The translations under genes and the position numbers were made by a program. Of a stretch of DNA of 64,000 nucleotides, positions 6,807 to 26,234 are shown piece after piece. How positions within the stretch are numbered: position 1 is the stretch's first letter; each line of letters opens with the position of its first letter. Under the pieces are notes generated by a model. The model was not told where the DNA came from, did no database searches, and saw only the letters and a program-made list of their open reading frames with translations. The stretch comes from Schizochytrium sp. TIO01 (lineage: Eukaryota > Protista > Bigyra: Labyrinthulomycetes): assembly GCA_004764695.1 (NCBI GenBank), contig SMSO01000035.1, forward strand, positions 3,794,040 to 3,858,039. The letters are read 5' to 3'.

Positions 6807-9800
6807 TTATACAAAAGGCATCCAGCCCTCGTACATCCTTGCTAGACGCTTTTCAGATGTCGCTTGGGCAGTCAACGTCGCAACTAATGTTTCCACGGGC
6901 TCCGACGCCGAGAGTTTGGCATCCAATCTTCGGAGAACCTCCGTTGCTTTGACTTGCCGACGTTTACGTTGTGTCTCCTCGTCCGGAGCACGTCGACCAA
7001 AGTCGCCAGTGCCCTTACGGGCTAATGTCAGTAGCTTGCGCAAGCTCTCGCGAATACGTTGAGTACATTGCACGAGCCGATTTAGGGTTATATCAACCTG
7101 TGAAGAGAGAGTACGCTGTGCAATAAGATCTGACGCAAGCTCGAAGAATGGGCCCTCCTGATCAGCACCACGCCGAATGTTGGAGATGTTCGCCCATACC
7201 TGGGCGTTATTTAATAAAGCAGTACTTCGCACATGTTCAAGTTCATTCTCAAGCGCAGAACGAAGCTGCTCTGCTTTATCAAGTTTTCCTTGGCGGTATT
7301 GACGCCTTGCTTCTTCAGCTTCATCAATTTCCTTGGCAGCCTCGCGAAGACCACGAGTTTGCTGCATGAGTTCCAAGCCCTCAAGTACACCTCGGGCTAA
7401 CTCAAAAACCTCGCGAGAAGTTTCTTCAACAAGCGGCAGGAACTCGGCATCTAGAGACATACTTTCCCATGACTGAAGTGCCATAGGGACCCCTGTGGTC
7501 CCGGCGGAAGACCCCTCTGTACCTTCAGGTTTGTTGCCAGAGTTGTATCCGGTGTCCTCTTCCATCGACGGTGGAATACGGATATCTGCCGCCTGTGCTT
7601 CAATCTTGGCCACACTACTGAGAACGCGTTTCAGGGATTCTGCACTCTCTAACACACTCCGTCGGCTGGTATCTGATTGCGCGCCTGCGCGTCGGAAGGC
7701 TTCAATAGAACGGCCCAATTCAGCATCCATGTACAGAAGTTCACGACGTAAATCAAGGCGTGCCTTGACAGCGCTTAATGCAGCGCCAGATCTATCAAAA
7801 GCCCCAATACCGGCATTCCAAAACCAATCCAACGCATACGCGTGTTTCCATGCAATAGTAGGATCAATGCATTGCTTTGCAATTTGTGCAACTTGATCCT
7901 GAACATTGTCGGGATTCACACCAGAAATAGTGCTCTCAATATTTTGCTGGCAGCGACGAATGCTTTGCGTCATTCGCTCAATATCCCTGTCCGAAAATGA
8001 ATAGTCCTTTACATCAACAAGAGACTGAGCTGTATCAAGAACCTCATGAATACTGCTTCGCAAAATCTGCAAGCGGGCAAGCCAGTCATCTACTAATGTT
8101 TGAGATCCATACGTAGAAGCTTCACCATACTGCTTCAATCCCCGCTGAAGATCATTGAGACAAGTCATGGCGCGATCTGTGGTGGCCTTGAGATCTGCTG
8201 CCGGAGCATCGCGACGAACATCAAATGTAGTGAAACTCTTTGTGAGAGAGGCTTCAACTCGAGGCAACACGTGTCCTTGCTGCAAAGCAATCGACCCGCT
8301 TGCGAGCTGGGCCTGCATACGATCACACCGAACCTGCACCTGGATAATTGATTGAAGCGCTTCTGTAAGCCATTCGCGACGAAGCAACAGATTGTTTCTC
8401 AGTTCATCGATTTCGGCCTCCTGTGCGTGCAGAACGGCACGAGGGTCGTCCTTGACCTGATTCTTAGGCGCGACCCCTCCCTCAATGTCATCTAACATAG
8501 ATTCTACATGACGTAAACTTGTCTCCTCAGAAGGTACTTGGTCAAGGGCGGTTTTATATTGTTCTTCAAGAGACAGAAGAGCATTCACATCTACCACATC
8601 GTCATCTTCAGAGAGGTGAACTTCGGAAGCAAGTAATGAAATACTCACATTTACATTGAGCGAGTTATCTGCAGTCTTTACTTTCGTTCCAGTCCACGAG
8701 ATACTTGAATCATTCACAATAGATCCTACTAATGACTGAATAAGCTCCTTGTGATTCCGCATGCACTGCATGGTGCTTCGCGCCCACCCTGCATATGCTC
8801 CATCTTTTTCCAAGAACTGAAGTCGTTCGCCTTCTGGACCGATTGGACGTTGCAACGGCAACGCATCACGCAGTACCTGAGTAAGTCTAAATGGAACAGT
8901 TTCGGGGACAGCCAGACGATGACCTGATTCAAAGCAAACATTGTAATCAATATGAACAAGTTCGCCACTCCCAGGGCCAGAGGAAAGGTCGAGCATGATA
9001 TTAGAGATGTGACGATCTCCTAATCCCATGATGTAGCCGAAAATACTACTTCCTGCCAATGAGCGAGAGTACCGTTTTGAGCGCTGCCACCAATCACCAG
9101 CATCGCGAGAAGTTGTGCAGAGTTCCCGCGCGAGCAAGTTGCGGGGCACCAAAGCTTCCAGTTCTCTAAGAGACTCAACAACGACTTGCTCGGGCCAATC
9201 GGTACGCCGAATTTCACGCGCAACATCAATTGAAACCCCCTTGGCTTCAGCAAGTCGTCGATGAATCACATTCAAATGGGCATCGCCCTTAAGAGCTTTG
9301 CGATCATCAGCCGCGCATCGCTCTTCATAAATATCCATAATAGGACGGGCTCCCTCAACCCATTGAACAAGGCCCACACTTTGTCCCAAAGCCACTACTT
9401 CATATGTGCGGATGCTGTGGGGCATTGGCATAAGAGAATCCATGATATAACCAATCTGTAGCACACGTTCATCAAGCCGCATATCGTCGCCACCCTTGAG
9501 CAGAAAACCATACTTCCCGCCATCCATGCCTCTAAGCCATACGCGTTTGGGGCGTGTTTTAGACGTCAGTGCTTGGATTCTGTCCTCAAATGAGTGAATA
9601 CCGACATCCCAATGTCCTGGCACTCGCAAAAGACTTGCGCCCTCCAAGGCAGTACTGCAAAATAGCTTAGGAGCAAACTCTCGCATTTTGGCATCTCCTT
9701 GCCGCATGTGAAGCCATGCTGCCAATTTACGCTCTTCCGATTCAAGAGCATCCCACGCAGATTCAACGCCATAAACTTCAAAGCTATCCATCATTTGAAT

Positions 9801-12800
9801 AGCACGGCCGATACTTTGCCGCAATTCACGGCTCCGTGATGGACGTGCAACCTCTTTTCGTTTGTCTGCATAGGTTGAGGAAGTAGATGAGTCGAAGTCA
9901 TCATCAGGGGAGTCCTCCTTGTCTGGTCCAACACTTGAGCCAAACGTCGCTTCAAAATGATCTTGTAAATTGGAGATGGAGGGTTGCATGACATCGCGGC
10001 AACTCTTCCGCTTTGTGGCCTCATCAAAATACACATTACTCTGAATACTACGAATAGCTTCAAGAGTTTTCATTTTTTGGGCTAGAGTACGTTTAATCAA
10101 TGCATACCAGCGTTCCTCAAGCCAAATCGCCGATCCAACAAGCTCCGCGACGATAGCCTCAGCACCGCTAAAGGAAGGAATCTGTGCTCGTAATTCTCGG
10201 AACAAATCCTCGCCGAGTTGCTCGCGAGCAGCAATGATACTCCAGGTGATACGACCTGGGTGCTCTCGTGCAATTCGTAAGGCTAACCCTTGTAATATCT
10301 CAGATGGTCGAGCCGCACCGGCTAGAACTTGTGGCAAGAGCTGAGTCCATGCTAAAGTTGGCGTTTTTGCAAGGCTGGCACGGCATTCGTCCCCGGATAC
10401 CGCTGCTTCAAGCTGGGGAACCATACCCAAAAGACGTAGGCACGCAGCTGTCCGTAGACCTAGCGTTTTGCGTGTGCCGCTGCTCCAGCACACAAACTTT
10501 GCATAAGCAGAAACAGCACTTTCCAGATCCCCCTCATTCTCGCAAAGTTGGCCAAACTCATACCAACACATACCATCAATGTTACTATCAACGAGGCTGG
10601 AAGCAGTCTCACAAGCATGCCAGAGGTGTACTTTGCGTGTCTCTGGTTCAGTTTCCAAGCGCCCAAGCTCCATGTGTGCAGTGTGTGCTTGAGCTGGTGC
10701 AAGTTGTGAAATGAGCTGGTCAGACTGTGGAGAGTCAGGTGCAGCAAGAAATTTACGCAAAAGGTGCACGCTATCAGACTCGTTTTCATTCGTAGGTTCT
10801 CTCTCGTCATAACACAACAGAAGCCGCTGAGCGCATTGCATATTGCCAGTTTCGTGAGCCTTTCGCGCTGCTACAAGAAGAGCACTTGGCCTTGCTTGCT
10901 CAGTGGCAAGACGCAGTGGCCACCACATGGCGGGGAGGGATGATATTTCCTCGATTCGGGATACTGGTAACGCTTGCAAATCATCACGAAGTCCACACGC
11001 ACGTACAGCCCATAGTTGAGTCTGATAACGACTCAAGCAACGGTGGTTTGCCCCAGACAAGAACGCTAGAGTAAAATCTTTTTGCAAAGCACGATCTGCT
11101 TGCACTAGGCCTTCATAGGTTCCATAAATATGGTCTGAGTCGGCTGCGCTTTGTATCATGCCCACTTGCTCGAGAAGTGCTTTGGAAGTCCAATAATCTG
11201 AAAAACTTCTAGAGGAGTCCTCCATGAGCGAAGGTGAGAGACGGCTGATTGGCTCTAGCAGACTTGGCACCATGACACAACCCTGTGTTGTAAGATTTGC
11301 GAGTGGTCCGCTAAGATACAATGAGCTTGCGCTGCAGGTTAGAGCATCGGCGAGTGCCTCCTGGCTGGCTTCCCATGCAGACTCTTGTTCCTGCGTAAGG
11401 AACATACTCCATTGTGACACTCCCGTTGTGTCTCCAGAAGCAACGAGGCAGTCCATGGCACCCTGCACGTTCCAGCGAAGAGCCTCTAAAGAGGCGTCCC
11501 AGGTACCAAGTGTATCACGGTCAGCCAGAAGGTCCTGTGTAGCTGAAGCATACATACGAGCCGCTTCTTCATATGACTCATGGCTTTGCAAAGCAGCAGC
11601 AGCGATAGTTCGTTCCCATATATCTGAACCTGTGGCAGGGACCCATTTGTTAAGCTCTTTAATAATACTCGCATCTTCACAACGTTGTACAAGCGCTTGT
11701 CCAAGTTTCCGTAAAATCTGTGGATTTGGCTGCCCCTCATCTGGTACTTCAAGCAACGATCTCCAAGCATGCCAGATGAAATCTGCATCGGGTGTACTTG
11801 CATATTTATCATCCAAAATACGTTTGCGCGTGTTGCGAAGCCAGTTCTGACATACTTGGCGATTTTTGTCAAAGAATTTGCATGCCTTGCGAGCTTCCGC
11901 GGACTGATCAACATGTACCGGCAGATTCTTCGTGCCAAACTCGGCCCGGGCGCTAGCAGCAGCAGCATCTGGGGTAGACGACGCAGACTCCTTCTCTTGT
12001 GCCTCCTCCGCTCGAATACGTGCTCCTGCATCTGCTGCAAGAAGTATCGCACGTTCTAAGTGAAATACAAGAGCTCGGCCTACAGAAACATGTGCTACAG
12101 CATCTTCAGTTTTCATTGGTGCACTAGGGAGAGTAGCAGCCTGCACGGCGTGGATGAGGTGATCAAGCTGCATTAAGGTCTGGCTTGCAGGACCTGCATA
12201 GGAACGTAATTTGCGCTGAACAAGTTGGTCTGCAAATACCGAAGCAACAGCTGCTCGACGGCTGTGAGCCACTGCTGTCAAATTGCTGTCTGCAGAAATT
12301 CTGTGTGCTACGAACTGCATTCCACACGTAAGTACCTGCTGTAAATAGTCATCAACATGTTCAAAGCCTCGCGAACGAGTCTCACCTGCAGCCCATATGT
12401 GGTCAAGAAAGTTTTGAGCACGGCTCAAAAGTTGTCCCTGAACTGCAAACTCAAGACAACCGACCCGCGCAGCAGCTATTCTTTGGACACCAGGATTGGC
12501 TGCATCAAGAAGGGCAAGCACAAGAGCTTTATCAGACGTCTTTTCCACAGCGAGAGTGCATATTGATACGTCTTCTGCATTACCCAACGTGCAGGCTCGA
12601 GCGATCACAGGAGATAAGCTGTTATCGGGTGCAGATTGGAGGGCCAAAATAAGGAGACTGCGGCGTCGCTGCTTCAGTGCAAGCTTTGCGGCAGTCTCAA
12701 TAAGGCTGCAATATACCTTACTTGAACTACCATGCTCTAGCTTACAATTGACCAAGACGAGTTCTAGCCACTGAGTTTGGAGTTCTGGATGCTCCCGGAG

Positions 12801-14558
12801 CTTGGAGAGAGCCTTTCTAAGTGCTTTAGATGAGGGGGCGCTCATACAGGTCTGTGCCGGTGAGTTTGCCTTGGTTAGTTCAAGTCCTACTTGAATAAGA
12901 AAGTTTGCCCAAGAAGGAGGGTCCTGTCCACTTTGTAGTATCATATTCTTGAGATGCTTCTCGAAGCTGACTTTGGTAAACGCATACTTGTAAAAGGACT
13001 TGAGTGCGTCTTCATGTGAATTCCTACGCAGCAATAACTGCAATATGGCACCACCTCTGTCCTCCAGCATCCTTAACAAAGCAGATTCATCAAGCTGTGC
13101 AGCAGTCCGGCCTAACGCAGGAAGAACAACACTAATTGCTTTTGAAGAGGGGCGCCGGAGAGCACATGAGAGAGCCGATGTCATTTGAGACCACACCACT
13201 TGGTTAACGCCCTGAACAGTCTCTAAAACTGGCACCCACCGTGAACAGACGATGGCCAGAAGATCTAGAGCTGCCCAATCACATTGTGCGAAAAGAAGCT
13301 GTGCAAAGCGCGTTGAATTTTGTGCCCACTTATCTAACTGTACATCGGCAATGACTGGCGGGCGAATGCGCTTAAGCGCGACATAAATAATAAGCCAAGC
13401 AGTCAAGACACCCGTTGTACGTGTGGAAAAGTCCGTCTGCTGACATGCAGAGTGCATATCCTGATCAAGTGCATAGAACATTTGCGTATAAACAGCTTCT
13501 TGCGAAATCCAATCTGACTCGAACTCAGGTCTTAAGAGAAACCTCGTAGCGCTGTTGAGAAGCTCTGCAGTCTCTTTACCTGGGACTGGGTAAGATGCGC
13601 ACATGCCCACCACTGCATTTACAAGTGTTGGAAAATGCATACGTATCTGAAAGAGGCCTGAGACTCTCCGTGCTACGTCTGTGAGAGTGTCCAACACTTT
13701 CACAAACCTCAACTGTGCTACGGCGCTCACGCCCATCCCCCCTCCAGCATTACCAGAGTTCGCGCCATCCAACGTGCTTCTGTGGCTTGAGGCCAGACCT
13801 GCACTTCTTGAAATAAGGTCACGCGTAACTAGAAGATCATTTACCACGGTACTCAGCATACTTGATGGATCGTGGTAATGAATAATCGAAGCTGCTGTCA
13901 AGTGCATCCAGCTCTCGCCAGCATGTTTTTTTGCGAAGATGTAGTTTTGCTCTAATCCAGAAAGGACCCACTCTATCATAGATCCTGGAATCTCCTCTTC
14001 GCAGATGGCCACAACGGCACCTGCAAACTCCCTTCCACATGCCGCCAAATTTGAAGCCGTTTGTTGCAAAATGCTTAAAAGCGTTGCTCGCTCGGTAAGA
14101 TCTGCATTTGATCCCATCAAAAGCCTTGCAAATTCCTGTGCATATCGCTCCCGCAACTCGGAGTCTGATGACCATGATTCTGCTGCATCCGAAATCTCCA
14201 TTGCCCTCTGTGTGGCGCTTGAAGTCCCCACTTGTGATGCCGAAGTCGAGGTTGTATCTCGAATTTTCGCTCCAACCTTCAAAGTTAAATCCGGCTTTTG
14301 CTTTTGTTTCTGTTTTTGCTTTTGGCTTGGCTTTGAGTCAAGATGATCTCCCGCATTGTGATCCATATCCATGTTTAATCCAGACGTTGTCGTCAAAGAC
14401 GGAGACGCTGACGATGGTGACAATACCGCTGTCGAAGCCGCAGCTGCTGCCGATGGGGACGTCGCCGCAGTGTTTGCACTGCGACTTGCAGGTATTTTTG
14501 CGGCGTCTGGGGCGCCAGCAGGCGATGCCTTTGTCTTGGCGTCGCCTTGGTCTCCCAT
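6807..14558 (-). CDS. SMG1: Serine/threonine kinase SMG1 (PIKK family, nonsense-mediated decay)
   Basis: PIKK motifs TSKTRPKR, FLLKGGDDMRLDERVLQ, GLGDRHISN and VHIDYNVCFE (DYN is SMG1-type); ~600-aa insertion between kinase and FATC; FATC end LARMYEGWMPFV. First ATG at 14558; frame open to 14630. Confidence 0.88.
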   Translation of the reverse strand: MGDQGDAKTKASPAGAPDAAKIPASRSANTAATSPSAAAAASTAVLSPSSASPSLTTTSGLNMDMDHNAGDHLDSKPSQKQKQKQKQKPDLTLKVGAKIRDTTSTSASQVGTSSATQRAMEISDAAESWSSDSELRERYAQEFARLLMGSNADLTERATLLSILQQTASNLAACGREFAGAVVAICEEEIPGSMIEWVLSGLEQNYIFAKKHAGESWMHLTAASIIHYHDPSSMLSTVVNDLLVTRDLISRSAGLASSHRSTLDGANSGNAGGGMGVSAVAQLRFVKVLDTLTDVARRVSGLFQIRMHFPTLVNAVVGMCASYPVPGKETAELLNSATRFLLRPEFESDWISQEAVYTQMFYALDQDMHSACQQTDFSTRTTGVLTAWLIIYVALKRIRPPVIADVQLDKWAQNSTRFAQLLFAQCDWAALDLLAIVCSRWVPVLETVQGVNQVVWSQMTSALSCALRRPSSKAISVVLPALGRTAAQLDESALLRMLEDRGGAILQLLLRRNSHEDALKSFYKYAFTKVSFEKHLKNMILQSGQDPPSWANFLIQVGLELTKANSPAQTCMSAPSSKALRKALSKLREHPELQTQWLELVLVNCKLEHGSSSKVYCSLIETAAKLALKQRRRSLLILALQSAPDNSLSPVIARACTLGNAEDVSICTLAVEKTSDKALVLALLDAANPGVQRIAAARVGCLEFAVQGQLLSRAQNFLDHIWAAGETRSRGFEHVDDYLQQVLTCGMQFVAHRISADSNLTAVAHSRRAAVASVFADQLVQRKLRSYAGPASQTLMQLDHLIHAVQAATLPSAPMKTEDAVAHVSVGRALVFHLERAILLAADAGARIRAEEAQEKESASSTPDAAAASARAEFGTKNLPVHVDQSAEARKACKFFDKNRQVCQNWLRNTRKRILDDKYASTPDADFIWHAWRSLLEVPDEGQPNPQILRKLGQALVQRCEDASIIKELNKWVPATGSDIWERTIAAAALQSHESYEEAARMYASATQDLLADRDTLGTWDASLEALRWNVQGAMDCLVASGDTTGVSQWSMFLTQEQESAWEASQEALADALTCSASSLYLSGPLANLTTQGCVMVPSLLEPISRLSPSLMEDSSRSFSDYWTSKALLEQVGMIQSAADSDHIYGTYEGLVQADRALQKDFTLAFLSGANHRCLSRYQTQLWAVRACGLRDDLQALPVSRIEEISSLPAMWWPLRLATEQARPSALLVAARKAHETGNMQCAQRLLLCYDEREPTNENESDSVHLLRKFLAAPDSPQSDQLISQLAPAQAHTAHMELGRLETEPETRKVHLWHACETASSLVDSNIDGMCWYEFGQLCENEGDLESAVSAYAKFVCWSSGTRKTLGLRTAACLRLLGMVPQLEAAVSGDECRASLAKTPTLAWTQLLPQVLAGAARPSEILQGLALRIAREHPGRITWSIIAAREQLGEDLFRELRAQIPSFSGAEAIVAELVGSAIWLEERWYALIKRTLAQKMKTLEAIRSIQSNVYFDEATKRKSCRDVMQPSISNLQDHFEATFGSSVGPDKEDSPDDDFDSSTSSTYADKRKEVARPSRSRELRQSIGRAIQMMDSFEVYGVESAWDALESEERKLAAWLHMRQGDAKMREFAPKLFCSTALEGASLLRVPGHWDVGIHSFEDRIQALTSKTRPKRVWLRGMDGGKYGFLLKGGDDMRLDERVLQIGYIMDSLMPMPHSIRTYEVVALGQSVGLVQWVEGARPIMDIYEERCAADDRKALKGDAHLNVIHRRLAEAKGVSIDVAREIRRTDWPEQVVVESLRELEALVPRNLLARELCTTSRDAGDWWQRSKRYSRSLAGSSIFGYIMGLGDRHISNIMLDLSSGPGSGELVHIDYNVCFESGHRLAVPETVPFRLTQVLRDALPLQRPIGPEGERLQFLEKDGAYAGWARSTMQCMRNHKELIQSLVGSIVNDSSISWTGTKVKTADNSLNVNVSISLLASEVHLSEDDDVVDVNALLSLEEQYKTALDQVPSEETSLRHVESMLDDIEGGVAPKNQVKDDPRAVLHAQEAEIDELRNNLLLRREWLTEALQSIIQVQVRCDRMQAQLASGSIALQQGHVLPRVEASLTKSFTTFDVRRDAPAADLKATTDRAMTCLNDLQRGLKQYGEASTYGSQTLVDDWLARLQILRSSIHEVLDTAQSLVDVKDYSFSDRDIERMTQSIRRCQQNIESTISGVNPDNVQDQVAQIAKQCIDPTIAWKHAYALDWFWNAGIGAFDRSGAALSAVKARLDLRRELLYMDAELGRSIEAFRRAGAQSDTSRRSVLESAESLKRVLSSVAKIEAQAADIRIPPSMEEDTGYNSGNKPEGTEGSSAGTTGVPMALQSWESMSLDAEFLPLVEETSREVFELARGVLEGLELMQQTRGLREAAKEIDEAEEARRQYRQGKLDKAEQLRSALENELEHVRSTALLNNAQVWANISNIRRGADQEGPFFELASDLIAQRTLSSQVDITLNRLVQCTQRIRESLRKLLTLARKGTGDFGRRAPDEETQRKRRQVKATEVLRRLDAKLSASEPVETLVATLTAQATSEKRLARMYEGWMPFV

Positions 14559-14894
14559 CGCGAGCAAAGGTGGACCTGCGACAAAAGAGACACTCCGAGG
14601 CGATGCTGCGGTTTTTGCAACAACCTTCAAGTATGCAATGCGATCAATTCAATCCTATGAGCCTTGAAATAAACAAATGTTTTCACTAAAAATCATTAGA
14701 TACGTACATAGAGTAACACTAGCTAGCTAGCTAGCCCCTGCTCTAAGTGGCACTGCTAATCTACTACTACCACCGCTACCTGCCGCCCTCCACTGGCAGC
14801 AATAGAACATTTCTGATATAGTTCATTTGTGCCACAGGAAGTATGCTGCGACATGCTATAGAGTATAGCAAAATAGGCGCCTCTGTGCCAAAGC

Positions 14895-15960: not shown

Positions 15961-17279
15961 TGTAAGAAAAAAATAGTTGATGAAGTTGTAGGATCAAGCA
16001 ACGTAGCTAGCTATATAGGTTGATGTAGTTGAAAAATACACCAAGATCAAATCCATGAGATATGTCCAGAGAATTCTATCACCAGCAATATCTTGATTTC
16101 CTATTACAGAACCTAAAAGCCTGTCCGAGTCGTGAGAGCAGGCCTCTTTTAGTAGTCAGATTCTTTCCTGTGTTTCTATTTTATTTAATTAAAAGAGAAA
16201 AAAGTAAAAAAGTAAAAAACTCTCTTTCCAGTTATCAGTGATACTTCATAACCAAATCAATGCAATGAATGTTTTTAAAATACCCCTGTTCAGGTTTTAA
16301 AATGTGAGAAACGAGTTTTTCGAGAGTCCATTTTATTCGTACTTGAACCCCCCCCCCTCCCCCTGTCATTGAGAACATGATCATTTCTATGCTATGAGCG
16401 CTGGTTTCCCACCTCATTGCTGTGTATTTATTGGGTCAAGTCTGTTTTAGAAGGTAATGGAGGCGCCCATTCAGTAGGATTACTGCTCTTGATTCTTGGT
16501 GCCTTGACAAAAAAAGGACAAGGTAAAAATAAAATAGTATTTATTTTCTCCAAGGCTAATGACAGTAGGATCTCCAGTCCACCACGCCACTTGAAAGAAG
16601 AAATGCACACGTGGTAATCTGGTTTTCTCCATCCAAGCACTCTGGAACCTTCTCGAGGTATCATTTTCATTGCAGACAGTCAAAGTCTCTGACGCTGCTC
16701 TCAAATAATTTGATGGCTCCCAGAATAAACATTTGTTTTGATTAAAAGAGCCTGGACACACACAAAAAAACAAAACAAAAAACGAAAACCTTTCTTCTCT
16801 TCGACAAGTTTGGGCCGTATTGGTTCTTTCCGAGTCATTATGCAATAAGCCCGCGAGTTCAAAGTGCCTAACTAGTTCTACATTCCTCGCCATGCTTGCT
16901 CTCAATGGTCTTAGGTATGTATCCCTGCAAGCGCTCTCAACAGAACCGTCTTGCTTCCAAATCCACCCTCAGGAATTTTAATTTTAATTCTTAATTTTAA
17001 AAAATCCTCTTTACATGTATAGGTAGGTAGGTGGTATCCATTGAAGCGCCTCTCGCATACGAGAAGACTTTACATTGAACGACGAGCAATATTTCAGAGC
17101 ACTCAAATAGAGCAGTCGCTCTCAAATAGAGCAGTCGCTCTCAGGTGTTACTCACTTTTCAAAGAAAAAAATACTTTAGAAAACTGTTTTTGTTCTGTTT
17201 TCCTTTAAAATATTAGAAAATATGTGGAGGTACTACATAGAAGCATTCCCCATTTACGAGAAGACTTTACTTTGAACGA

Positions 17280-17733
17280 TGAAGCAGCACTACTAGGAGT
17301 CGAGGCTAGTGAGATCAGCGTCCTGGACACCGACGGCATGATCTCCGTCGAGTACGTCGCTACGAGCGAGGCCGGGTCGGGAGGAGACCCCCTGACTGCC
17401 GAGAATCTTCAAGCGATCCAATCCATCCATAGCCTCCTCCTGGCTAGCGTAACCTCGTTGGTGGAGAGTGGACTTGGACTCGATGCCGGTGACATCGAGA
17501 CGAGTGAGCTCGACCTTTGTACGGGTCGGACTTGCAATGATCGAGGAACTTGTAATAGCGACACCGGGGTCTGTGCTTGTGATTCTGGCGACTACTGGGG
17601 CATCAATTGCGAGACGAGCGTCAGTTGCCTCGCGGGGACCAAGCACCCTTCAAAGGCCTATTGTTTGTGCGACTTCCCAGCCTACGGCGAGCGCTGAGGG
17701 AACGCTGCCATTGATTGTGGTGTGTGCGCGTAA
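17280..17733 (+). pseudogene. 5'-truncated SEA-like/EGF-like extracellular protein gene end
   Basis: DLCTGRTCNDRGTCNSDTGVCACDSGDYWGINCE followed by a second EGF-like module; TGA at 17695-17697 sits where Cys is expected (YGER*), and the frame continues GNAAIDCGVCA to TAA at 17733; no own start codon. Confidence 0.75.
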
Positions 17734-17783
17734 ATTAAATCCATTTTTTTGGGGGGGGATTTGTGCAATGATCTGAGTGTGAT

Positions 17784-17796
17784 CTAACCCTAACCC
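17784..17796 (+). promoter_or_regulatory. Telomere-like/telo-box motif CTAACCCTAACCC upstream of the orphan ORF
   Basis: Two tandem CTAACC units about 72 nt before the ATG at 17869; function inferred. Confidence 0.3.
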
Positions 17797-17868
17797 CTGA
17801 GCGCTCGCTCGGTGAAGGTTTGGTCTTACAAGTCAACCAAACATCTATCTTGATCGCGTCGAGCAAAC

Positions 17869-18426
17869 ATGGCGCCCTTTGACGAGTCTAACAACAACGA
17901 CGGTAGCTCCGGTGGGATGATGGACCTTGCGCGACTCGTTGATTTAAGTCACAAAGTAATGAATTCCATGCGGGAAATTTATCGTTTGGATGTAGCTCAT
18001 GTCAAGAAGCCTGACTTAGAAAAGCTATTGCTTGATATAGAGAAAGCAACCTCCCAGGCATTAAGGGACCCCGGCATAGATAAAAACTCGGCAATCAATC
18101 TCGCCATACATTGTGGTATGGACGAATGCGTCGATTTGTTGGTAACATTGATTGAAAATGTCAAGGAGAGTTTCGCCGCACTTTCGAAACATAAAAATTA
18201 TTATCATGTTTGCCCTGATGTGTATGTCGACTTGTATAATGACGTGATCGAATCGCTCCAGAAAAATATCCCTGAATTCACAATTGAGTTAAGCAATGAG
18301 GAATTCGAAAACACCATGAACGATCTCGGAGCAAAATTGTCATCTATCAACAAATTATACAAGGTGTACAAGTTTAGCAAGAACCTTTGTGAGAATATAA
18401 TTATCACACCCCGGGATAGTTATTAA
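17869..18426 (+). CDS. Hypothetical protein, 185 aa, predicted helical, no recognised family
   Basis: Intact ATG-to-TAA ORF with AAACATGG start context and amphipathic helical patterning; visibly more AT-rich than its flanks. Confidence 0.65.
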   Translation: MAPFDESNNNDGSSGGMMDLARLVDLSHKVMNSMREIYRLDVAHVKKPDLEKLLLDIEKATSQALRDPGIDKNSAINLAIHCGMDECVDLLVTLIENVKESFAALSKHKNYYHVCPDVYVDLYNDVIESLQKNIPEFTIELSNEEFENTMNDLGAKLSSINKLYKVYKFSKNLCENIIITPRDSY

Positions 18427-18501
18427 ATCTTTGCTACATCAATCTATGAATTTACCAACCCCTCCCTTAAACAAGGAAATCAACATTTGATTAGTTTATT
18501 T

Positions 18502-18930
18502 TTAGTTACCACCCTGTGTCCATTGAAGTGTACATCGCTTCCCATGCCAAGGCCATCGACACTGGCAGTAGGAGAGGCCTGTGAAGGGTTGGGATCCATT
18601 GTTGGCACATGAGACGGCGATCTCGCAATTTACACCCCATTATCCACTTTTCTCCTTACAAGTACATAACCCAGTCAAGCTATCACATGTCCCGCGGCCA
18701 TTGCAATCTCGATTGGTGCAAAGGTCCACTGTGCTTGAGCTAATATCGACGCCCAGCTCTTCTTCGATAGAGGATGCAAGTGCACTTGGTTGTGCGCTAA
18801 TGATCTTCGATGCTTTCAGTTGCGCTGCAACCCCCCCGTCGTCGACGTTGTCATCGCTTGCGTCGAATGTGAATATATAGGTCAGGCTAATGCTACCACT
18901 TCCCGTGTCACACCAAGTCAGTGTTGAACC
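18502..18930 (-). pseudogene. 5'-truncated SEA-like/EGF-like gene end, paralogous to 17280-17733
   Basis: GSGSISLTY...DLCTNRDCNGRGTCDSLTGLCTCKEKSG*WGVNCEIAVSC...YCQCRWPWHGKRC...GGN*; premature TAA at 18640-18642 sits where Tyr is expected (paralog has GDYWGINCE). Confidence 0.8.
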
Positions 18931-19961
18931 ATATTTCAGAACACTCAAATAGAGGCGCCCTCAATTAGAGCAGTGGCTCTCAAATGGAGCAGTCGCCCTC
19001 AAATAGAGCAATCGCTCTCAAAGAGAGCAGTCGCCCTTAAGAAGAGCAGTCGCTCTCAAAGAGAGCAGTCGCTCCCAAATAGAGCAGTCGCTCCCAAATA
19101 GAGCAGGTGTTACTCACTTTTCAAAGAAAAATAATAATTAGAAAACTGTTTTTTGTTCTGTTTTCCTTTTAAGTATTAGAAAATGTGCGGAGGTACTATA
19201 TAGAAGCATTCCCCATTTACGAGAAGAATTTACTTTGAACGAGGGACAATATTTCAAAATACTCAAATAGAAGCGCCCTCAAATAGAGCAGTGGCTCTCA
19301 AATAGAGCAGTCGCCCTCAAATAGAGCAATCGCTCTCAAAGAGAGCAGTTGCTTTCAAAACGAGCAGGTGTGCTTTACTCATTAAAAAACAAAAACAAAA
19401 AAACGTTTTTAAATGTGTTTTATGTTTTTTTAAATTAGAAAATATGTGCAGGTACCTAGAAGTATCTCTCATGTACGAGACGACTTTACTTTGAACGATA
19501 ATCTAGTGAACTTCTCCATACTGCCCGTAATCCTGTGTTAAGCTTATTCTTTTCTGAGCCTATCGATGATAACACCCCCTCTGGTAGTGCGCTTGGTATA
19601 ATCTGCCACCATCCAAAAAACATATGAGAGCACTTAGTTCTCGATTAGTGACTATGCGAAAAAAAAAAAAGGAAAAAAAAAAGGATTTCTATCTACTGAC
19701 TTCTTCTTTTCATCATCAAACTTTTAATTAAAATAAATTAAAGAAACGAAAAGGCGACCTTGATAGCAATTTATTAATTAGTACTATATCAAGTAAAAAA
19801 ATAATTTTAAGACTATTTAATTTTTGGTTTGCAAACTTGTACAAAATCGAAAGCAAACCCCAAACGCGCAAAATCAAGAAAGCAAACCCCAAACATCGTA
19901 CACGACGGCAGTGTATTGGACAAAGGTATTCTTTCAGGGCACGTGAACAAGGTATACAACC

Positions 19962-22763
19962 ATGCCGTGGCGCGAGCAACATCAACATGTCAACGGCGGG
20001 TCCTTCCGGTATAGGCCACCTTTCGAACCAGAGGGCAACTTACAGAACAAGTCCAAGTATTGGGAGTCTCACAGTCAGCTTGGGCAGTACCTCACCGGGG
20101 ACGACCTTGACCCTAAGAAGTATCCTCACCTTCTCATTGAACGGTTTGCTCCAGCCCCAAACCCACTAGAGAAACTCACAGCGCATTTCGACGCTATGCA
20201 AATGCATGAAAAATCCGTCAACTTTGGGCTTTTTGGAAAGTCCAACGACAAGAGGTGCACAAGCCAGCGCGACTATGCCTTTGCGAGCTCTAAAGATTTC
20301 CACAGTGAAATGATGAAAAGGCATGACGAGCTTAGAAAATCTGACAACGCTGATGCACCAATTATCTCCGTCTACTCCTTCAAAGGAGGATGCGGAAAGT
20401 CTACGTCTACAATTAACTTAGCAGGAGGGCTGGTTGCGCAAGGTTATCGGGTTGGGATCATCGACGGTGACGCCCAAGGGAATTCGTCAGCTTTCTTCTC
20501 TAATGATAAACTTGCCAACGCAATCCTCGAGACGCTAGACGCTTCTTCGCATGCACCCGAAACCGAATCTTGCATAAGTGTGGATGAAAAAAATAGGGAG
20601 AACGAAGAGGACCATGGTGATACCGACGTAGGCGACGACGACAGCCATGGAAGCAAAAGATGCGGTGCGTTTGACAGCCCTGAAGGAAAGACTTCAAATT
20701 ACATGAGGTCTTGTAAGACAATGAGAGGCGAGCAGAGTGATAGGGCTTCTCTGTACATGGGCTCTAGCGGCGAACGTATGGATGATGGAAGTGGTTATCA
20801 CGATTCCCCAGGCCGCGTCTTCTCGAGTGAGGATGGGTTTGCTACCAGCAGAACTTTTGCTGCTAGTTCTATCTTGAATGCATATGATGCCGAGACTCGA
20901 ACCCATGTGAAACAAGAGATTCCGGACCCGCCCGGAGTTCATGTAAAGCAAGAAAGTCCGCATCGCCCCAGACCTCCAGATTCGAGCCCTCCTACACAGA
21001 GTCCGAGGACAGGGTCAACTAGAGAACACCCGCGGAGCTTCAAACTTCATAATGATACTGAAAGGGTGACTCAAATATACATGAGAGATCGCGAAAATAG
21101 TGGCTGGGACTCGACAACTTCATTAGGGTCAATTTTAAGTCTATTCATAGAGGAAAATTCGAATAAACTTATCAAAGGAGATCCCACCCAGTGCGATGAA
21201 TTCGAAATGCAAAGAGTTGTATTTCCTCCTGACCTACAAGGAAACTTTGGGGGGGAAATCTACATTCTCCCCGTAGGTGATGACCTTCCGGCTGAGGACA
21301 TTCTTTCAAATGAGTTTACCAAAACCCCAGTTGGTAGTTGCTCTTTCTTGTGTAGCTTTCGAATGCTCTGCCACACTCTTGCTCGCAAGTACAAGCTTGA
21401 TGTGGTTCTCGTGGATTTGGGTCCAGCTAAAGCTTTGTTCAACACATGGGTAGTTGCCAGTAGCGATTATGTTCTACCTCCAGCTCAGGCCACATGTTTC
21501 GGATTACAAGCGTCAACTCAAATGTGGCAGAAAGTAATGCCGGAGATTTGGGCCCAACAACAAGAGTGGCACCTGAAAACTCTCCCCACGCCAGGTGCTT
21601 CCTATAAGCATTACTCTCCAGTTGAGAAGGAAAAAATTCGCCGCGTTTGCATCTTCAATCCTCTCACAAAACTTCTCCCAGTTCTTATTAACAACTTTGA
21701 TAAGAACCGTAGTGGCCAAAAAGTAGTAGACGACTTTTATCTAAACCGCAATGGCCAAAGAGCAGCAAACGTCATTAGTCTTGGACTCAACGACTCGCTT
21801 TTCATTCACTCAATAGAGACGGCATTCGCTAGTTTGTCTGAGAATAGCAACCTTTGCAGCAAAGAATCTGGGATGAAGCTCCCTTCTCCTTGGTTTCACC
21901 AAAACAACCCTTTTCCTGTACGAACACACAACCTTTCTCTCGCAGAAGGAAACGTGGTGTGGATGGGACTCGAAAACTCCTCGCTTATTGGACTTTCAGA
22001 GCGCCGCTATTTGCCAGTCGCCCTGTTGTACAAAACCGATGAGAACTTTTCCACTCTACCAGAAGGAAGGCAGCGGTATTTTGATTTATCAGGCCGCCTT
22101 GCTGATACATGCAACATTGGAATGGGCCATAAGCCAAGTCTAACGCAGGAGAAGGATGTGATACTACTTGTTCACCTTCTTGCAGACATTGTTGAATCCG
22201 TATCATGGCCAGTGTCGAAAAAACAGTTTCGAGCTGCAGTCTTTAATCGAATCAGAGACCGTATTCAAAATAAAGAGTGCGGTTGGGATAGATTTCCAGA
22301 CGCTATCGTGGAGAGTTCTCTTAAGCGTTATGAAAAAATTTCCCAGCGGTGCGACATTGTTCTTCGGGCGCATGGTCCTTATGACATGAACCCTATACTC
22401 GTACAGCTTGAATATGTTTCACGCACCAATCGACTGAGGACTTTGGATGCAATCATAAGAGACCTTGAGAGCAGGAAAGTCCTGGCGGAGAAGGAATCTG
22501 ATAGAGGGACATGCCAAGATTGCTACTCCGTTGTTTTTCAGTATGCTACAGGAAAAGATGAGAATAAGCTTTCTAGCGGAATACTCCAACGCCGTGACGA
22601 TAATGCTGCAGACTCTTCTCCTAGAGGCAAACGAAGCAGGGATGGGCAGCCAAAGAGCGACAGCATCTTCGAGATTTGTGAGATCCCACCTTTCAACGGA
22701 GTTCCTTGTAAGGTTGCTTCATTTCGTGGTGTCGAGAGAATCTGGCAATCTCATCATAAATAA
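19962..22763 (+). CDS. ParA/Soj-family (SIMIBI) ATPase with low-complexity insertion and putative C-terminal PD-(D/E)XK-like domain, 933 aa
   Basis: Deviant Walker A ISVYSFKGGCGKST, A' box GIIDGDAQGNSS, Walker B DVVLVDLGP...SSDYVLPP; C-terminal IVE...RCDIVL...ILVQLEY; intronless with ACAACCATG start context. Confidence 0.85.
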   Translation: MPWREQHQHVNGGSFRYRPPFEPEGNLQNKSKYWESHSQLGQYLTGDDLDPKKYPHLLIERFAPAPNPLEKLTAHFDAMQMHEKSVNFGLFGKSNDKRCTSQRDYAFASSKDFHSEMMKRHDELRKSDNADAPIISVYSFKGGCGKSTSTINLAGGLVAQGYRVGIIDGDAQGNSSAFFSNDKLANAILETLDASSHAPETESCISVDEKNRENEEDHGDTDVGDDDSHGSKRCGAFDSPEGKTSNYMRSCKTMRGEQSDRASLYMGSSGERMDDGSGYHDSPGRVFSSEDGFATSRTFAASSILNAYDAETRTHVKQEIPDPPGVHVKQESPHRPRPPDSSPPTQSPRTGSTREHPRSFKLHNDTERVTQIYMRDRENSGWDSTTSLGSILSLFIEENSNKLIKGDPTQCDEFEMQRVVFPPDLQGNFGGEIYILPVGDDLPAEDILSNEFTKTPVGSCSFLCSFRMLCHTLARKYKLDVVLVDLGPAKALFNTWVVASSDYVLPPAQATCFGLQASTQMWQKVMPEIWAQQQEWHLKTLPTPGASYKHYSPVEKEKIRRVCIFNPLTKLLPVLINNFDKNRSGQKVVDDFYLNRNGQRAANVISLGLNDSLFIHSIETAFASLSENSNLCSKESGMKLPSPWFHQNNPFPVRTHNLSLAEGNVVWMGLENSSLIGLSERRYLPVALLYKTDENFSTLPEGRQRYFDLSGRLADTCNIGMGHKPSLTQEKDVILLVHLLADIVESVSWPVSKKQFRAAVFNRIRDRIQNKECGWDRFPDAIVESSLKRYEKISQRCDIVLRAHGPYDMNPILVQLEYVSRTNRLRTLDAIIRDLESRKVLAEKESDRGTCQDCYSVVFQYATGKDENKLSSGILQRRDDNAADSSPRGKRSRDGQPKSDSIFEICEIPPFNGVPCKVASFRGVERIWQSHHK

Positions 22764-23258: not shown

Positions 23259-26234
23259 ATGTCTTGGAGCCGCCAAGATGCTCCTCGAAGTCGACTCCAA
23301 GCCCTGAGTGAATCTGCGCTAGATCAAGAATGGGAGTTGAGCCTTCGAGGTGGAGGCCAGCGGCAGCAGCACCAGCAGCAGCAGCACCAAACCAGCCTTC
23401 CTCAAGGTCAAAGTGATCGAGGTTTGCACCAGAGTTTGTTTGATTCTCAAAGTGCCAGTGCTCACGACCGCTTGTTGTCAACAAGGTCACCACTCCCCCC
23501 CTGGGCTCGAATGAATTTAGGTCCTAGTGCTGATGGAGAAGCTGATTATGCTGCGACTCATGCGACTAATACTGGGGTACACTTAGCACGGAAGTTCTGG
23601 GCCTATAAATTGCTACAAAAGAGTTTTTCTGCCTTCGAGCGATCCGTAAAACTAGCAAGAATTCAACGTCGATCAAGGAAGCTAAGAGCTATGCGAATGT
23701 GGGCTAGCTCCTTGCAACGCAGAATTTTGAGAACATGGAAAGCAGTAGTGGAGAGCCAAAACCACTATCGAGAGCAGACGCTAAAGGCATATTGGTTTTG
23801 GGCACACTGCGTCTCTCGAAAAGTAATCCAGGGATTTCGAATTCACGCACGTGCATCAAGGCTTCAACGCTTTAAGGCGGAACGATTGAGGATACGTCTT
23901 GAAGCTGATCAGAGGAGACGACTTTTACTACGCGTGTGGGGAACATGGTGCGAAGTCGCCTTTCGCAACCACAGGCGCGCAGAAAGATTTGCTAACGAAC
24001 GCCTTCTTTGGAAATCTCTTTTTGCGTGGAGAGACACCCCGAGACAGTCACTTCTGGAGCAAGAGGAGGACAGACTCGCACGAGCAACAATCTATCACCG
24101 TCGAAAATGCCTTAATCAGGGGCTTGGGGTTCTCCTTGAAAATAAAAGGAAAAATCAAAAGGAACGCGAAGACGAATTTGCAGCTATTTGGTTTCGTTGG
24201 CATGTGTTAACTGGCGGCGCATTTCGCAACTGGGTTAAGATGGCTAAACCAGCAATACTTTATGGCCAAAAGGTAAATTCAATGCGCACAAATCGCAGTT
24301 TCGTAACCAAAAATCGTGTCTTTAGTATGTGGAAGCGCCATGTTGAGGATTCGAAGAAGAGATGTGAACAGATAGCACAGGCATTGAGACACTGGGCTCG
24401 CAAAGCGCTGGCTACTGCTTTTCATTCTTGGGTGTACGCCTTGACCCAAAAAGTCAAGATCCGTGGCTGTGAAATTCAGGCAAAGTTGGCAGTAGAAAGG
24501 CTACAAAAAAACCGTGGTATCAAAGCTTTAAAATTGCATCTTCAGAATCGCAAGAATAGCAAAACCTTGATAGAAAAAATGGATAAACAAAGGAGCCGAA
24601 CGTTGCTGCTGCAGGCTTTCAATTGTTTGCGTTTATCCGCTGCTCACTCTAAACAAATTACCCGATTAAACGAAATTGCAAAGAATCATGCTCGCATACA
24701 GTGTCTGCGACGCACATGGAATACTATGGTTCTTTATAAAGTACAGGAAATTGAACATTACAAAGTAGGGCTCTCGCGAGCAGAAAATTTCTATTCACAA
24801 CGCGTAGCACCTCGCGTCTGTGCGAGATCCTGGCATACATGGTCTGAGTTTTGTGCTCAAGCTCAGTTTAACCGTGTTCAGCAGGCTCGGGCAGAAAACT
24901 TCCGGTGTCATTTCGGGAAACAAGTTGGCCTTCGTGTACTTCAATCGAATGCGGCCTCATCCCGCACTTCAAGGCTGTTGAATGTTCAAGCAGTACAGTT
25001 TGCTAATGAACATAAGCTTCGCTTGGCCTGGGTAAAATGGCAAATGTATCATATTTGGTTTTTAAGAGAGGCCCAAAAGGTTGCTAAGGCAAACTTGCAC
25101 TATTGTCACCGGTTGTACAAATGGGTGTGGGGATTTTGGGTCGCACTACACGCTGAAAAGCAGCATGAGCGCGAGCTTGCTGCTTTTGCCAGTCAATGGC
25201 GTCGTAAGCACCTCTTACGACATAGCATGGCAATTTTACTTGATGCTGCTATTGAACACCAAACTCATCACGCGGCGGTCATCCAATCGCGAGAGGCAAA
25301 ACGCGCTGCATCACTTGCTGATCGTGTCGCGCGTATTGCTTTTCATTGGCGGGACTTCACACTCCGCCGGCGACTGGCACGTTCAGAAACCGAGATTACA
25401 GCTCTCGAGAGTGCAAGGCAGCGACCGGTCCTTCGAACTTTCCGTAACCCAAACCCAGAAGCAAACATTCGCCCACCTTTAGTAGCTCCTCGATATTCAC
25501 ATCAAGGCCAAAATCAGACATGGTCATACGAAGCTCGTGCACAGGTTCATGCAAGTCTATCCCTTGATTGGCTCGATGCGCTGGCCCCTCATGCCACCTC
25601 GGGAACTACGACCCGCAGAGCTCGGCCTGCTCCAAGGCGACCCATAGATATCGTACTTAACCACCACCACCCACCGCAGCAACAAAATGTTCACCATCAG
25701 CAGCAGCCCGGCGTAGTAGAGCCAATCCAAGGTGGTGTACCTCTTTTTCCTGCAAACGCCAGCTTTACTCCATCGTTGGTTACAACTGAAGCGAACATTT
25801 TTAATGAGGATCCACAACATTTGTCCCTCGCTTCGCAGCACGCCCAAAATTCTCAGAATCTGTCAAATATCCGAAGCCTTCACCACGGAGACCTCGCCGA
25901 CGACTCAATGTCTTCAACAGCATTATTCACAACAGCAGCTGCAGAAGCATTCGCGCCTGGCATGGGAACAGCTGCCAACAGCTCGGTTTCACCGTCCTTG
26001 GCATCACAAGCCCGAGAATATTTAGACCTGAAACGCCGCGTTAGAGCCGACAAGCGTCGCAGACTAGCTTTGAGAGACCGCCTCCGCACTTGCACGGCCT
26101 CACCCAGCGAGACTGAGGTGTGGTCTCGAGAGCTCGTGCTCATGCAGCAACGCCAAGCAGAGCTCAGACGCAGACGCGAGACACTCCTGCCTCTGATTAG
26201 GGCGGCCCTGCTTGAGCGTGCAAACCCGAACTGA
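23259..26234 (+). CDS. SFI1: Sfi1-repeat (centrin-binding) centriole/basal-body protein
   Basis: Many Ax7LLxxxFxxW-type repeats (AERFANERLLWKSLFAW, ALRHWARKALATAFHSW, AVQFANEHKLRLAWVKW); C-terminal RPAPRRP motif and coiled coil. Confidence 0.75.
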   Translation: MSWSRQDAPRSRLQALSESALDQEWELSLRGGGQRQQHQQQQHQTSLPQGQSDRGLHQSLFDSQSASAHDRLLSTRSPLPPWARMNLGPSADGEADYAATHATNTGVHLARKFWAYKLLQKSFSAFERSVKLARIQRRSRKLRAMRMWASSLQRRILRTWKAVVESQNHYREQTLKAYWFWAHCVSRKVIQGFRIHARASRLQRFKAERLRIRLEADQRRRLLLRVWGTWCEVAFRNHRRAERFANERLLWKSLFAWRDTPRQSLLEQEEDRLARATIYHRRKCLNQGLGVLLENKRKNQKEREDEFAAIWFRWHVLTGGAFRNWVKMAKPAILYGQKVNSMRTNRSFVTKNRVFSMWKRHVEDSKKRCEQIAQALRHWARKALATAFHSWVYALTQKVKIRGCEIQAKLAVERLQKNRGIKALKLHLQNRKNSKTLIEKMDKQRSRTLLLQAFNCLRLSAAHSKQITRLNEIAKNHARIQCLRRTWNTMVLYKVQEIEHYKVGLSRAENFYSQRVAPRVCARSWHTWSEFCAQAQFNRVQQARAENFRCHFGKQVGLRVLQSNAASSRTSRLLNVQAVQFANEHKLRLAWVKWQMYHIWFLREAQKVAKANLHYCHRLYKWVWGFWVALHAEKQHERELAAFASQWRRKHLLRHSMAILLDAAIEHQTHHAAVIQSREAKRAASLADRVARIAFHWRDFTLRRRLARSETEITALESARQRPVLRTFRNPNPEANIRPPLVAPRYSHQGQNQTWSYEARAQVHASLSLDWLDALAPHATSGTTTRRARPAPRRPIDIVLNHHHPPQQQNVHHQQQPGVVEPIQGGVPLFPANASFTPSLVTTEANIFNEDPQHLSLASQHAQNSQNLSNIRSLHHGDLADDSMSSTALFTTAAAEAFAPGMGTAANSSVSPSLASQAREYLDLKRRVRADKRRRLALRDRLRTCTASPSETEVWSRELVLMQQRQAELRRRRETLLPLIRAALLERANPN

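Follow-up and report, generated by a model that had tools for sequence, protein, structure and literature searches.

The locus and its gene

The stretch analysed here, a window of 64,000 nucleotides from contig SMSO01000035.1 of Schizochytrium sp. TIO01, encodes on its forward strand, at positions 19962 to 22763, a protein of 933 amino acids (aa) in which a ParA-type ATPase is followed by a domain predicted to have the restriction-endonuclease (REase) fold. ParA-type ATPases are the textbook motors of bacterial DNA segregation and positioning. An initial annotation, made from the letters of the DNA, had proposed that a bacterial-type ParA ATPase is fused here to an REase-like domain. The fusion stands, as it lies in one intact open reading frame (ORF) and in a transcript-derived protein of the same length. 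The features of the gene are the following:

19962..22763, forward strand: complete coding sequence without introns, encoding 933 aa and ending in a stop (ORF list and transcript-derived proteins P0001 and P0002)
19962..20342, forward strand: N-terminal region, aa 1-127, with no assigned domain (no Pfam match)
20343..20537, forward strand: first half of the ATPase, aa 128-192 (Pfam AAA_31, CbiA and ParA over aa 134-192; ParA pNOB8 and Soj in the PDB)
20538..21206, forward strand: low-complexity insertion of 223 residues, aa 193-415, rich in S, D, E, T, R, G and P (composition)
21207..22127, forward strand: second half of the ATPase, aa 416-722, with Walker B, SSDYVLPP, NPLTKLLPVLINNF and a C-terminal helix (family matches)
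22134..22601, forward strand: predicted C-terminal REase-fold (PD-(D/E)xK-like) domain with a degenerate active site, aa 725-880 (AlphaFold2 model, structure searches, BLASTP)
22353..22355, forward strand: codon of D798, the D of PD and the sole catalytic-motif residue kept (column invariant in alignments A1, A2 and A3)
22404..22412, forward strand: Q815-L816-E817, at the position of the invariant E-x-K of the family (alignments)
22629..22640, forward strand: basic cluster KRSR in the C-terminal tail, aa 890-893, resembling a nuclear localisation signal (residue pattern)

In a collection of 5.8 billion protein sequences, the matching cluster consists of two MMETSP transcript ORFs and one Logan contig protein. 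The two former, P0001 and P0002 (sample MMETSP0961, 933 aa, type:complete), are 99% identical to the window protein over 100% of its length, and therefore the gene is, on the evidence of the MMETSP transcript, transcribed and colinear with its mRNA, without introns. The MMETSP header carries taxid 87120 (Rhizopogon, a fungus), which is probably 87102, Aurantiochytrium limacinum, with two digits transposed; MMETSP0958-0961 belong to the latter species. Compared with the transcript and Logan proteins, the window protein shows 9-12 residue differences, and the window sequence is another allele or that of a close strain. The distribution of these differences is uneven: four fall in the insertion, five to seven in the stretch of aa 653-884 (the same count as for aa 745-884) and none in the ATPase core. 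Such a pattern suggests that the ATPase core is the most constrained part of the protein and that aa 745-884 evolve under relaxed constraint.

The paralogue count proposed in the initial annotation gives a single copy, with no paralogues in the genome (64.07 Mb, 37 contigs), and the gene has a guanine-cytosine (GC) content of 0.47, like its surroundings. The gene is probably nuclear and native to a thraustochytrid protist, either Aurantiochytrium limacinum or a species very near to it, in which it is expressed from a single copy. The KRSR cluster may serve as a nuclear localisation signal. Of 13 members of the nuclease-bearing clade described below, fragments as well as full-length proteins, 7 have a K[KR]x[KR] or similar cluster within their final 70 residues.

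The ParA-type ATPase

All the ATPase motifs quoted in the initial annotation are located in the reading frame. The deviant Walker A motif KGGCGKST occupies aa 141-148 (nucleotides 20382-20405), within SFKGGCGKST at aa 139-148, and is followed by the A'/sensor-1 motif IIDGDAQGN at aa 166-174. After the insertion, which is probably disordered, the Walker B motif VVLVDLGP is found at aa 481-488 (nucleotides 21402-21425) and SSDYVLPP at aa 500-507 (nucleotides 21459-21482). Three Pfam families match above their curated cut-offs: AAA_31 (E=1.5e-16, 61.3 bits against 27), CbiA (E=3.7e-13, 50 bits against 25.4) and PF10609 (38.6 bits against 27.1). Sequence searches of NCBIfam and the PDB return ParA, Soj and MinD over the first 50-80 residues, together with a weak second stretch at Walker B. 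The residues invariant in the alignment of the protein family are K141, G142, G143, K146, T148, D168, D170 and Q172 in the first half of the ATPase, and D485, G487, P488, N494, S500, D502, L505, P506 and P507 in the second. Judged by its sequence, the domain is a genuine ParA/MinD-type ATPase with the signature lysine K141 in addition to K146, D168/D170 and D485; all the residues for ATP binding, hydrolysis and signature-lysine sandwich dimerisation are kept, and the domain is predicted to perform all three.

The assignment to a named ParA-like subfamily is a different matter. The NCBIfam model of the partition ParA (ParA_partition, NF041546) reaches 47.5 bits against a cut-off of 180, with only aa 134-185 matching, ApbC reaches 30.7 bits against 348, and minD_bact 22.5 against 212.9. 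The match to Cfd1 (6G2G) has E=0.02 and covers only the N-terminal 40 residues or so, and the searches with PADLOC gave only weak N-terminal matches to PDC-M28B. By these scores the window protein is not an orthologue of Nbp35/Cfd1/Ind1, Get3 or the plastid MinD, in agreement with the initial annotation, which had set it apart from these eukaryotic proteins.

The protein family and its range

An exhaustive HMMER (phmmer) search over 1.84 billion representatives gave 817 matches at E<=1e-3 and 54 at E<=1e-10. The best of them cover both halves of the ATPase, and the second half is the best-matching stretch in most. The family is distinguished by D[VL]GP after Walker B, by an invariant Asn followed by S[CSA]D[YF]xLPP, and by NPLTxxLP. 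The later segments that the initial annotation had picked out as ParA-like (FRMLC..LARKYKLD, VMPEIW, KLLPVLINNF and SLIGLS..LPVALL) fall in columns conserved within the family. The N-terminal region, aa 1-127, aligns weakly with the N-terminal helical region of the relatives P0004, P0005, P0008 and P0013. The insertion between the ATPase halves is variable, and Walker A and the SCDYxLPP motif stand 160 to 359 residues apart in the relatives; in an ordinary ParA this spacing is, by our own estimate, roughly 135 residues.

The family is highly divergent. The nearest relative from outside the species, P0004, is 38% identical over the matched stretches in phmmer, and BLASTP aligns the two proteins over aa 416-816 of the window protein at 1e-43 with 28% identity. 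No orthologue above 50% identity was found among 15 billion proteins. The members with a named source belong to the cryptophyte Hanusia phi (EukProt), the green alga Cymbomonas tetramitiformis (KAK3235361.1) and MMETSP; the remaining ones come from marine or other metagenomes and from Tara. The Hanusia phi protein, P0006 (909 aa), consists of two tandem ParA-like ATPase units, with SCDYILPP at 225 and SCDFLLPP at 678, and has no REase domain; it could be a covalently linked pseudo-dimer.

The motif block of the family was also scanned as a degenerate DNA pattern of roughly 45 bits (our own estimate). IMG/VR contained no match, and among the 185,579 species genomes of bacteria and archaea one dubious match appeared. 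The single match lies in a high-GC contig of 1.8 kb (L162:1-1790, CAIUWO010000215.1), binned into a metagenome-assembled genome of Candidatus Hydrogenedentes. This contig encodes a Hanusia-like ParA variant with a GGVYKTT Walker A motif, in-frame stops upstream and a poly-Gly tail, and probably entered the bin as a eukaryotic contaminant. Scans for related loci in IMG/VR and metagenomes gave neither family members nor genomic context; what they returned was generic ParA of phages, plasmids and bacteria, aligned at the Walker A region. Word-indexed protein searches, whether with the full protein, the family profile or the C-terminal end of P0011, found nothing beyond generic ParA and the cluster of the window protein itself; such searches perform poorly here because the family is too divergent and low-complexity words swamp the candidate lists. 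The scores in the ESM Atlas, 0.85 or below, are uninformative.

The solved structure closest to the family profile is PDB 3PG5, an uncharacterised ParA-like protein of 361 aa from Corynebacterium diphtheriae (E=7.2e-25, both ATPase halves). It has in common with the family the unusual D-V-G-P-S...N...C-D block after Walker B, which argues for a bacterial ParA ancestry of the ATPase. It differs in that it is bacterial, lacks both the C-terminal REase domain and the long insertion, and ends the motif with CDAFVTP where the family has SCDYxLPP. The "bacterial-type" ATPase of the initial annotation thus stands in its ParA ancestry but not in its bacterial assignment, as the protein belongs to a family with motifs of its own, whose motif block is nearly absent from the prokaryotic genomes scanned and absent from IMG/VR, and as the base composition of the gene is that of the genome around it. 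On the sequences sampled, the family appears to be divergent and restricted to eukaryotes, and old enough to have reached this high divergence.

The fold of the C-terminal domain

The C-terminal part, aa 640-933, was modelled with AlphaFold2 (AF2). The core of the predicted domain has the order alpha-beta-beta-beta-alpha-beta(-beta), made up of a helix at 753-770 (KKQFRAAVFNRIRDRIQN), strands at 782-785 (IVES), 799-802 (IVLR, directly after D798) and 812-818 (ILVQLEY), a helix at 826-848 and a strand at 855-862. The pattern of helices and strands that the initial annotation had read from the sequence is reproduced exactly, and the alignments place QLE at the (D/E)xK position. Alignment A2, which scattered the query fragment, was left out of the modelling.

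Searches with this model point to one fold. In VIA-align, REase-fold proteins make up about 40 of the 50 top-ranking structural neighbours, with R.SwaI (Z 8.0) in the lead, followed by Rep15 (7.3), CinB (7.1), EcoRV (6.6) and HincII (6.0), and Foldseek returns HincII, EcoRV, cap-snatching endonucleases and Hjc at E-values from 2e-3 to 6e-2. The initial annotation had named this comparison as a test of its proposal, and the C-terminus does model as an REase fold.

The same region of the relatives carries a conserved domain of 150 residues after the ATPase, present in eleven representative clusters (P0005, P0008, P0009, P0011, P0013, P0015, P0017, P0018, P0019, P0025 and P0096) and also in P0007; in all, about 13 clusters have it. 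Its canonical motifs are an invariant helix Glu, (R)PD, [VI]IExK and then QVxxY; in the numbering of the fragment P0157, E149, D196, E215 and K217 are invariant in the canonical members and Q236 nearly so. The series E...(P)D...ExK...QxxxY is the motif set of the RecB/Cas4-type PD-(D/E)xK nucleases. Pfam gives sub-threshold matches in the canonical relatives, to PDDEXK_9 (PF08011) in three members, the best at 0.0021, and to PDDEXK_3 (PF13366) in one, at 4.3e-4; the window protein has no Pfam PDDEXK match.

The model of P0157 has a mean predicted local distance difference test (pLDDT) score of 65.4. Foldseek relates it to Cas4 SSO0001, a bunyaviral cap-snatching endonuclease, AdnAB, SPARDA, CinB and RecE, and VIA-align to R.SwaI (Z 7.5), CinB (7.4), Rep15 (7.2), TT1808, EcoRV, HsdR and Hjc. 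The top three neighbours, R.SwaI, Rep15 and CinB, are therefore the same for the window protein and for P0157. The fold assignment is based on this agreement and on the enrichment for one fold, rather than on any single Z-score, and on these models the C-terminus of the window protein is assigned the REase fold.

Relation to the canonical nuclease and probable loss of the active site

The window domain is linked to the canonical nuclease domain through the intermediate relatives P0007, P0005 and P0004, the tree of the ATPase core, and the fold. P0007, a fragment and the sister of P0004, reads CDFVIWANGPFDRRMLLLEVK...QQLRRY, and the window protein reads CDIVLRAHGPYDMNPILVQLEY; aligned, P0007 has CD...LLLEVK...Q..RRY, the window protein CD...ILVQLEY and P0004 CD...VLVNIT. 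An insert of the form [HK]ESxG..R..C before the fourth strand is specific to the subclade and common to the window protein, P0004 and P0005. Pairwise comparisons in a set of 13 sequences form a chain, from the window protein to P0004 (6e-4) and P0005 (0.03), from P0004 to P0005 (0.04) and from P0005 to P0008 (6e-4).

The tree of the ATPase core was calculated from 45 sequences and 299 columns (FastTree, LG+gamma, midpoint root), leaving out near-identical members of a cluster and any sequence that covers less than 70% of the core. All the nuclease-bearing members fall in one clade with a support of 0.937, and the window protein is nested inside it. The grouping of the window protein with P0004 and P0007 has a support of 0.838, and that of these three with the canonical P0005 has 0.996. 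The subclade insert, the bridge through P0007 and the tree together indicate that the window domain is a derived member of the nuclease family, although the sequence support for this homology is modest.

The catalytic positions point to a loss. At the ExK position, P0007 has LLLEVK, P0005 VIEAK and P0011 VIEVK, whereas the window protein has ILVQLE. Four of its five conserved positions are substituted, with R757 in place of the helix Glu, Q815 and E817 in place of the E and K, and A830 in place of the Gln, while D798 is kept. The intact active nuclease that the initial annotation implied is accordingly not supported. Because of these substitutions, and because the allelic differences point the same way, the canonical nuclease chemistry has probably been lost in the window protein, and we hold this with rather high confidence. 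P0004 has N-I-T at the ExK position and its sister P0007 is intact, so that the active site appears to have been lost twice, independently; the support of the grouping on which this depends is the 0.838 given above.

Several observations weigh against the picture of a homologous, inactivated nuclease. The individual structural Z-scores, 8 or below, are middling by the tool's own scale. The AF2 model of the window protein has a mean pLDDT of 61.6, with 10-residue blocks of the domain core ranging from 52 to 90, and canonical members were present in its alignment, which makes the fold match partly dependent on them. A hidden Markov model (HMM) of the canonical domains without P0007 misses the C-terminus of the window protein, and hhalign gives the window and canonical domains a probability of 0.3%, though in the same register. 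The best targeted E-values are only 3e-4 (BLASTP against P0007, same register) and 1.5e-3 (HMM including P0007). Besides the window protein, the nuclease-bearing members all come from metagenomes or unnamed records, and their eukaryotic origin is presumed. Finally, BamHI (ExE) and BglII (ExQ) are active with the Lys replaced, and since these enzymes tolerate E or Q at that position, it is conceivable that D798 and E817 still bind a metal.

Comparison with known systems

The closest published framework is the survey of ParA in prokaryotic immunity by Li, Burroughs and Aravind, of 22 October 2026 (bioRxiv 10.64898/2026.10.19.760177). It proposes ParA proteins as widespread immune "fulcrum" NTPases with a few standalone copies transferred to eukaryotes. 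The PriB1/ConB1 group defined there is marked by an Asn before Walker A, a Gln two residues after DxD and a Val in Walker A. The consensus of the family described here, NFKGGVGKT / DADxQGN, has all three states, which are common to many ParA proteins and so discriminate poorly; in the window protein S139 and C144 deviate and Q172 is kept. For the bacterial ConB1 assemblage and for the eukaryotic ParA clades, the survey proposes invading or selfish DNA as the target, and in bacteria this assemblage pairs ParA with REase effectors. In the effector-ParAB systems of the same survey, the REase effectors are fused N-terminally to ParA, whereas in the family of the window protein the REase domain is C-terminal. 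The survey also suggests that inactive REase domains act as DNA sensors.

Two eukaryotic groups, Euk1 and Euk2, are described in the same work as standalone ParA of metazoans and photosynthetic eukaryotes, derived from transposon/prophage (STP) lineages. The family described here, which may belong to either group, likewise occurs in protists and algae (Cymbomonas, Hanusia); the architecture of the window protein is a ParA-REase fusion and not a standalone ParA. The survey contains no eukaryotic ParA with a C-terminal REase fusion and mentions no thraustochytrid, and no literature on ParA-like proteins in Aurantiochytrium was found. As far as could be found, a eukaryotic family with a C-terminal REase fusion, nuclear-type tails and repeated catalytic inactivation is undescribed. 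The theme of ParA in genetic conflict and the transfer of ParA to eukaryotes are already published.

Among structurally characterised proteins, the partition ParA/Soj group (pNOB8 ParA 5K5Z/5U1J, Thermus thermophilus Soj 1WCV) has in common with the window protein the deviant Walker A with the signature lysine, the DxD and the Walker B motif. By analogy, ATP-sandwich dimerisation and non-specific DNA binding would be the chemistry expected of both. The window protein differs in being encoded by a eukaryotic nuclear gene and in having the 223-residue insertion and the additional C-terminal domain. With the PD-(D/E)xK nucleases (R.SwaI 5TGQ, EcoRV, HincII, CinB 7ESZ, Cas4 SSO0001 4IC1), the predicted domain has in common the alpha-beta-beta-beta-alpha-beta core; the canonical family members also have E...(P)D...ExK...QxxxY, where the window protein has R757, D798, Q815-L-E817 and A830. 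The Crinkler/RHS effectors, which the initial annotation had brought in for comparison, are multicopy, diversify rapidly and combine a header, an AAA+/STAND-type NTPase and an REase, whereas the window protein is a SIMIBI/ParA protein, is single-copy and has no Pfam header domain.

Proposed function and alternative explanations

The best explanation of the locus, held with moderate confidence, is a native thraustochytrid gene of a eukaryotic ParA-REase family whose product has lost the ability to cut and acts as an ATP-switched nuclear DNA binder. In the proposed mechanism, the family would be built from a PriB1-like ParA-type ATPase with a variable insertion, a C-terminal PD-(D/E)xK nuclease and often a basic tail resembling a nuclear localisation signal. 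Its members would form ATP-sandwich dimers that bind DNA, as other ParA proteins do. In the ancestral protein, ATP-driven dimerisation on DNA may have juxtaposed two nuclease domains and led to cleavage, with foreign or selfish DNA, or a repair intermediate, as the possible target. Cutting would then have been lost in Aurantiochytrium and, separately, in the P0004 lineage, with the REase module probably kept for DNA binding or sensing. The present protein could coat, sequester or position DNA without cleaving it. Such a non-cutting binder matches the "interceptor" role proposed for immune ParA by Li, Burroughs and Aravind (bioRxiv 10.64898/2026.10.19.760177).

A conflict or anti-invader role is plausible by analogy with the systems surveyed by Li et al. 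2026, and a conflict-type role would have somewhat higher odds than a housekeeping substrate, because the family is patchy, fast-evolving and ancestrally fused to a nuclease, with a bacterial precedent.

The alternative that survives best, although we consider it unlikely, is a housekeeping role outside conflict, in which a ParA-like ATPase positions a nuclear or cytoplasmic cargo and the REase-fold domain is only an adaptor. ParA proteins are established as positioning many cargos (reviewed in bioRxiv 10.64898/2026.10.19.760177), and the present gene is a single copy among housekeeping genes, with the ATPase core as its most constrained part. This explanation has to contend with a patchy and very divergent family, whose nearest outside relative and missing close orthologues are described above, and with the ancestral fusion to an intact nuclease, which argues for DNA as the substrate.

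Next stands an active ATP-dependent nuclease with a variant, BamHI-like site formed by D798 and E817, working as a conflict or anti-invader enzyme. The fold is predicted to be present, D798 is invariant, the residue at the Lys position is acidic as in active BamHI, and the reading frame is intact and expressed. However, a Gln (Q815) stands in place of the leading acidic residue of ExK, which serves as a metal ligand, and Arg (R757) and Ala (A830) replace the helix Glu and the conserved Gln; of the 9-12 allelic substitutions, five to seven fall in aa 745-884, whereas the ATPase core has none; and the HMM of the canonical domain fails to recognise the window domain. Such an enzyme is therefore rather improbable.

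Very improbable is an origin as a gene carried in by a viral island or by a mobile or selfish element, as a recent bacterial transfer or as an assembly contaminant: plasmids, phages and transposons commonly carry ParA genes, and repeat units specific to the locus lie directly upstream (17037-19499), but a transposon is rejected by the single copy and the lack of terminal inverted repeats, a viral island or mirusvirus integrant by the housekeeping neighbours, and a transfer or contaminant by a composition like that of the flanks, by the transcription of the gene in the MMETSP transcriptome and by the near-absence of the family motif from prokaryotes, together with the IMG/VR and metagenome scans, in which only Walker A matched.

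Returning to the ATP-switched nuclear DNA binder, the locus is of interest as a chromosomal, expressed eukaryotic ParA fused to an REase-fold domain, which anchors the protist fusion family to a culturable organism. Aurantiochytrium is genetically tractable. The family also offers a natural comparison between relatives with an intact nuclease and two lineages with apparently independent loss of the active site and a retained ATPase, that is, between cutting and ATP-dependent binding or sequestration. Aurantiochytrium hosts persistent mirusvirus episomes (PMC12606086), and because of this a link between a host ParA-like protein and the control of episomes is directly testable. A more far-reaching version, which we regard as a long shot, takes the nuclear ParA-REase family as eukaryote-specific and as an undescribed protist system of innate defence or DNA surveillance, with the nuclease-dead version repurposed to recognise, sequester or partition episomal or foreign DNA, perhaps with the upstream 19-bp arrays acting in a parS-like manner.

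Genomic neighbourhood and upstream repeats

The gene lies in an ordinary, gene-dense part of the chromosome, as indicated by an intact, intronless gene for a PIKK-family kinase of 2607 aa on the reverse strand at 6807-14630, with PI3_PI4_kinase and a C-terminal FATC domain. The other long flanking ORFs are likewise intact and encode housekeeping proteins, namely a tandem 4HBT thioesterase, a D-Tyr-tRNA deacylase, a TLC-domain protein, an ABCC-type transporter and a sulfotransferase. The island of decayed sequences envisaged in the initial annotation is thus not borne out, and its suggestion of a selfish element finds no support in the single copy, the neighbours and the flanks, in which no terminal inverted repeats were seen around the gene. 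Pfam scans of the ParA-like protein and of the flanking ORFs found no ParB-like ORF near the gene, and no parS partner was identified.

Upstream of the gene, a repeat unit of roughly 250-320 bp occurs in three copies (17037-17280, 18928-19243 and 19253-19499). Each unit contains a tandem array of a 19-bp repeat with the consensus of about AGAGCAGTCGCTCTCAAAT and a 5-bp dyad AGAGC/GCTCT, in 3, about 9 and about 5 copies, respectively; together the arrays span 17096-19376. A probe of two 19-bp units, with up to 3 mismatches allowed, matches this locus only in the 64-Mb genome, and the last array stops about 590 bp upstream of the start codon of the ParA-like gene. A parS-like role of these dyad repeats is pure speculation. 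In the 1.65-kb stretch between the first and second units, an ORF of 185 aa lies on the forward strand at 17869-18426; it has no Pfam match above threshold and nothing above 0.85 in the ESM Atlas.

Directly downstream of the ParA-like gene, an ORF of 991 aa (23259-26234, forward strand) is without significant Pfam match. By eye, it contains many Trp-containing basic helical repeats (LRTWKAVV, FRNWVKMA, FHSWVYAL) and Gln-rich ends, and the repeats presumably resemble the centrin-binding repeats of the Sfi1 type.

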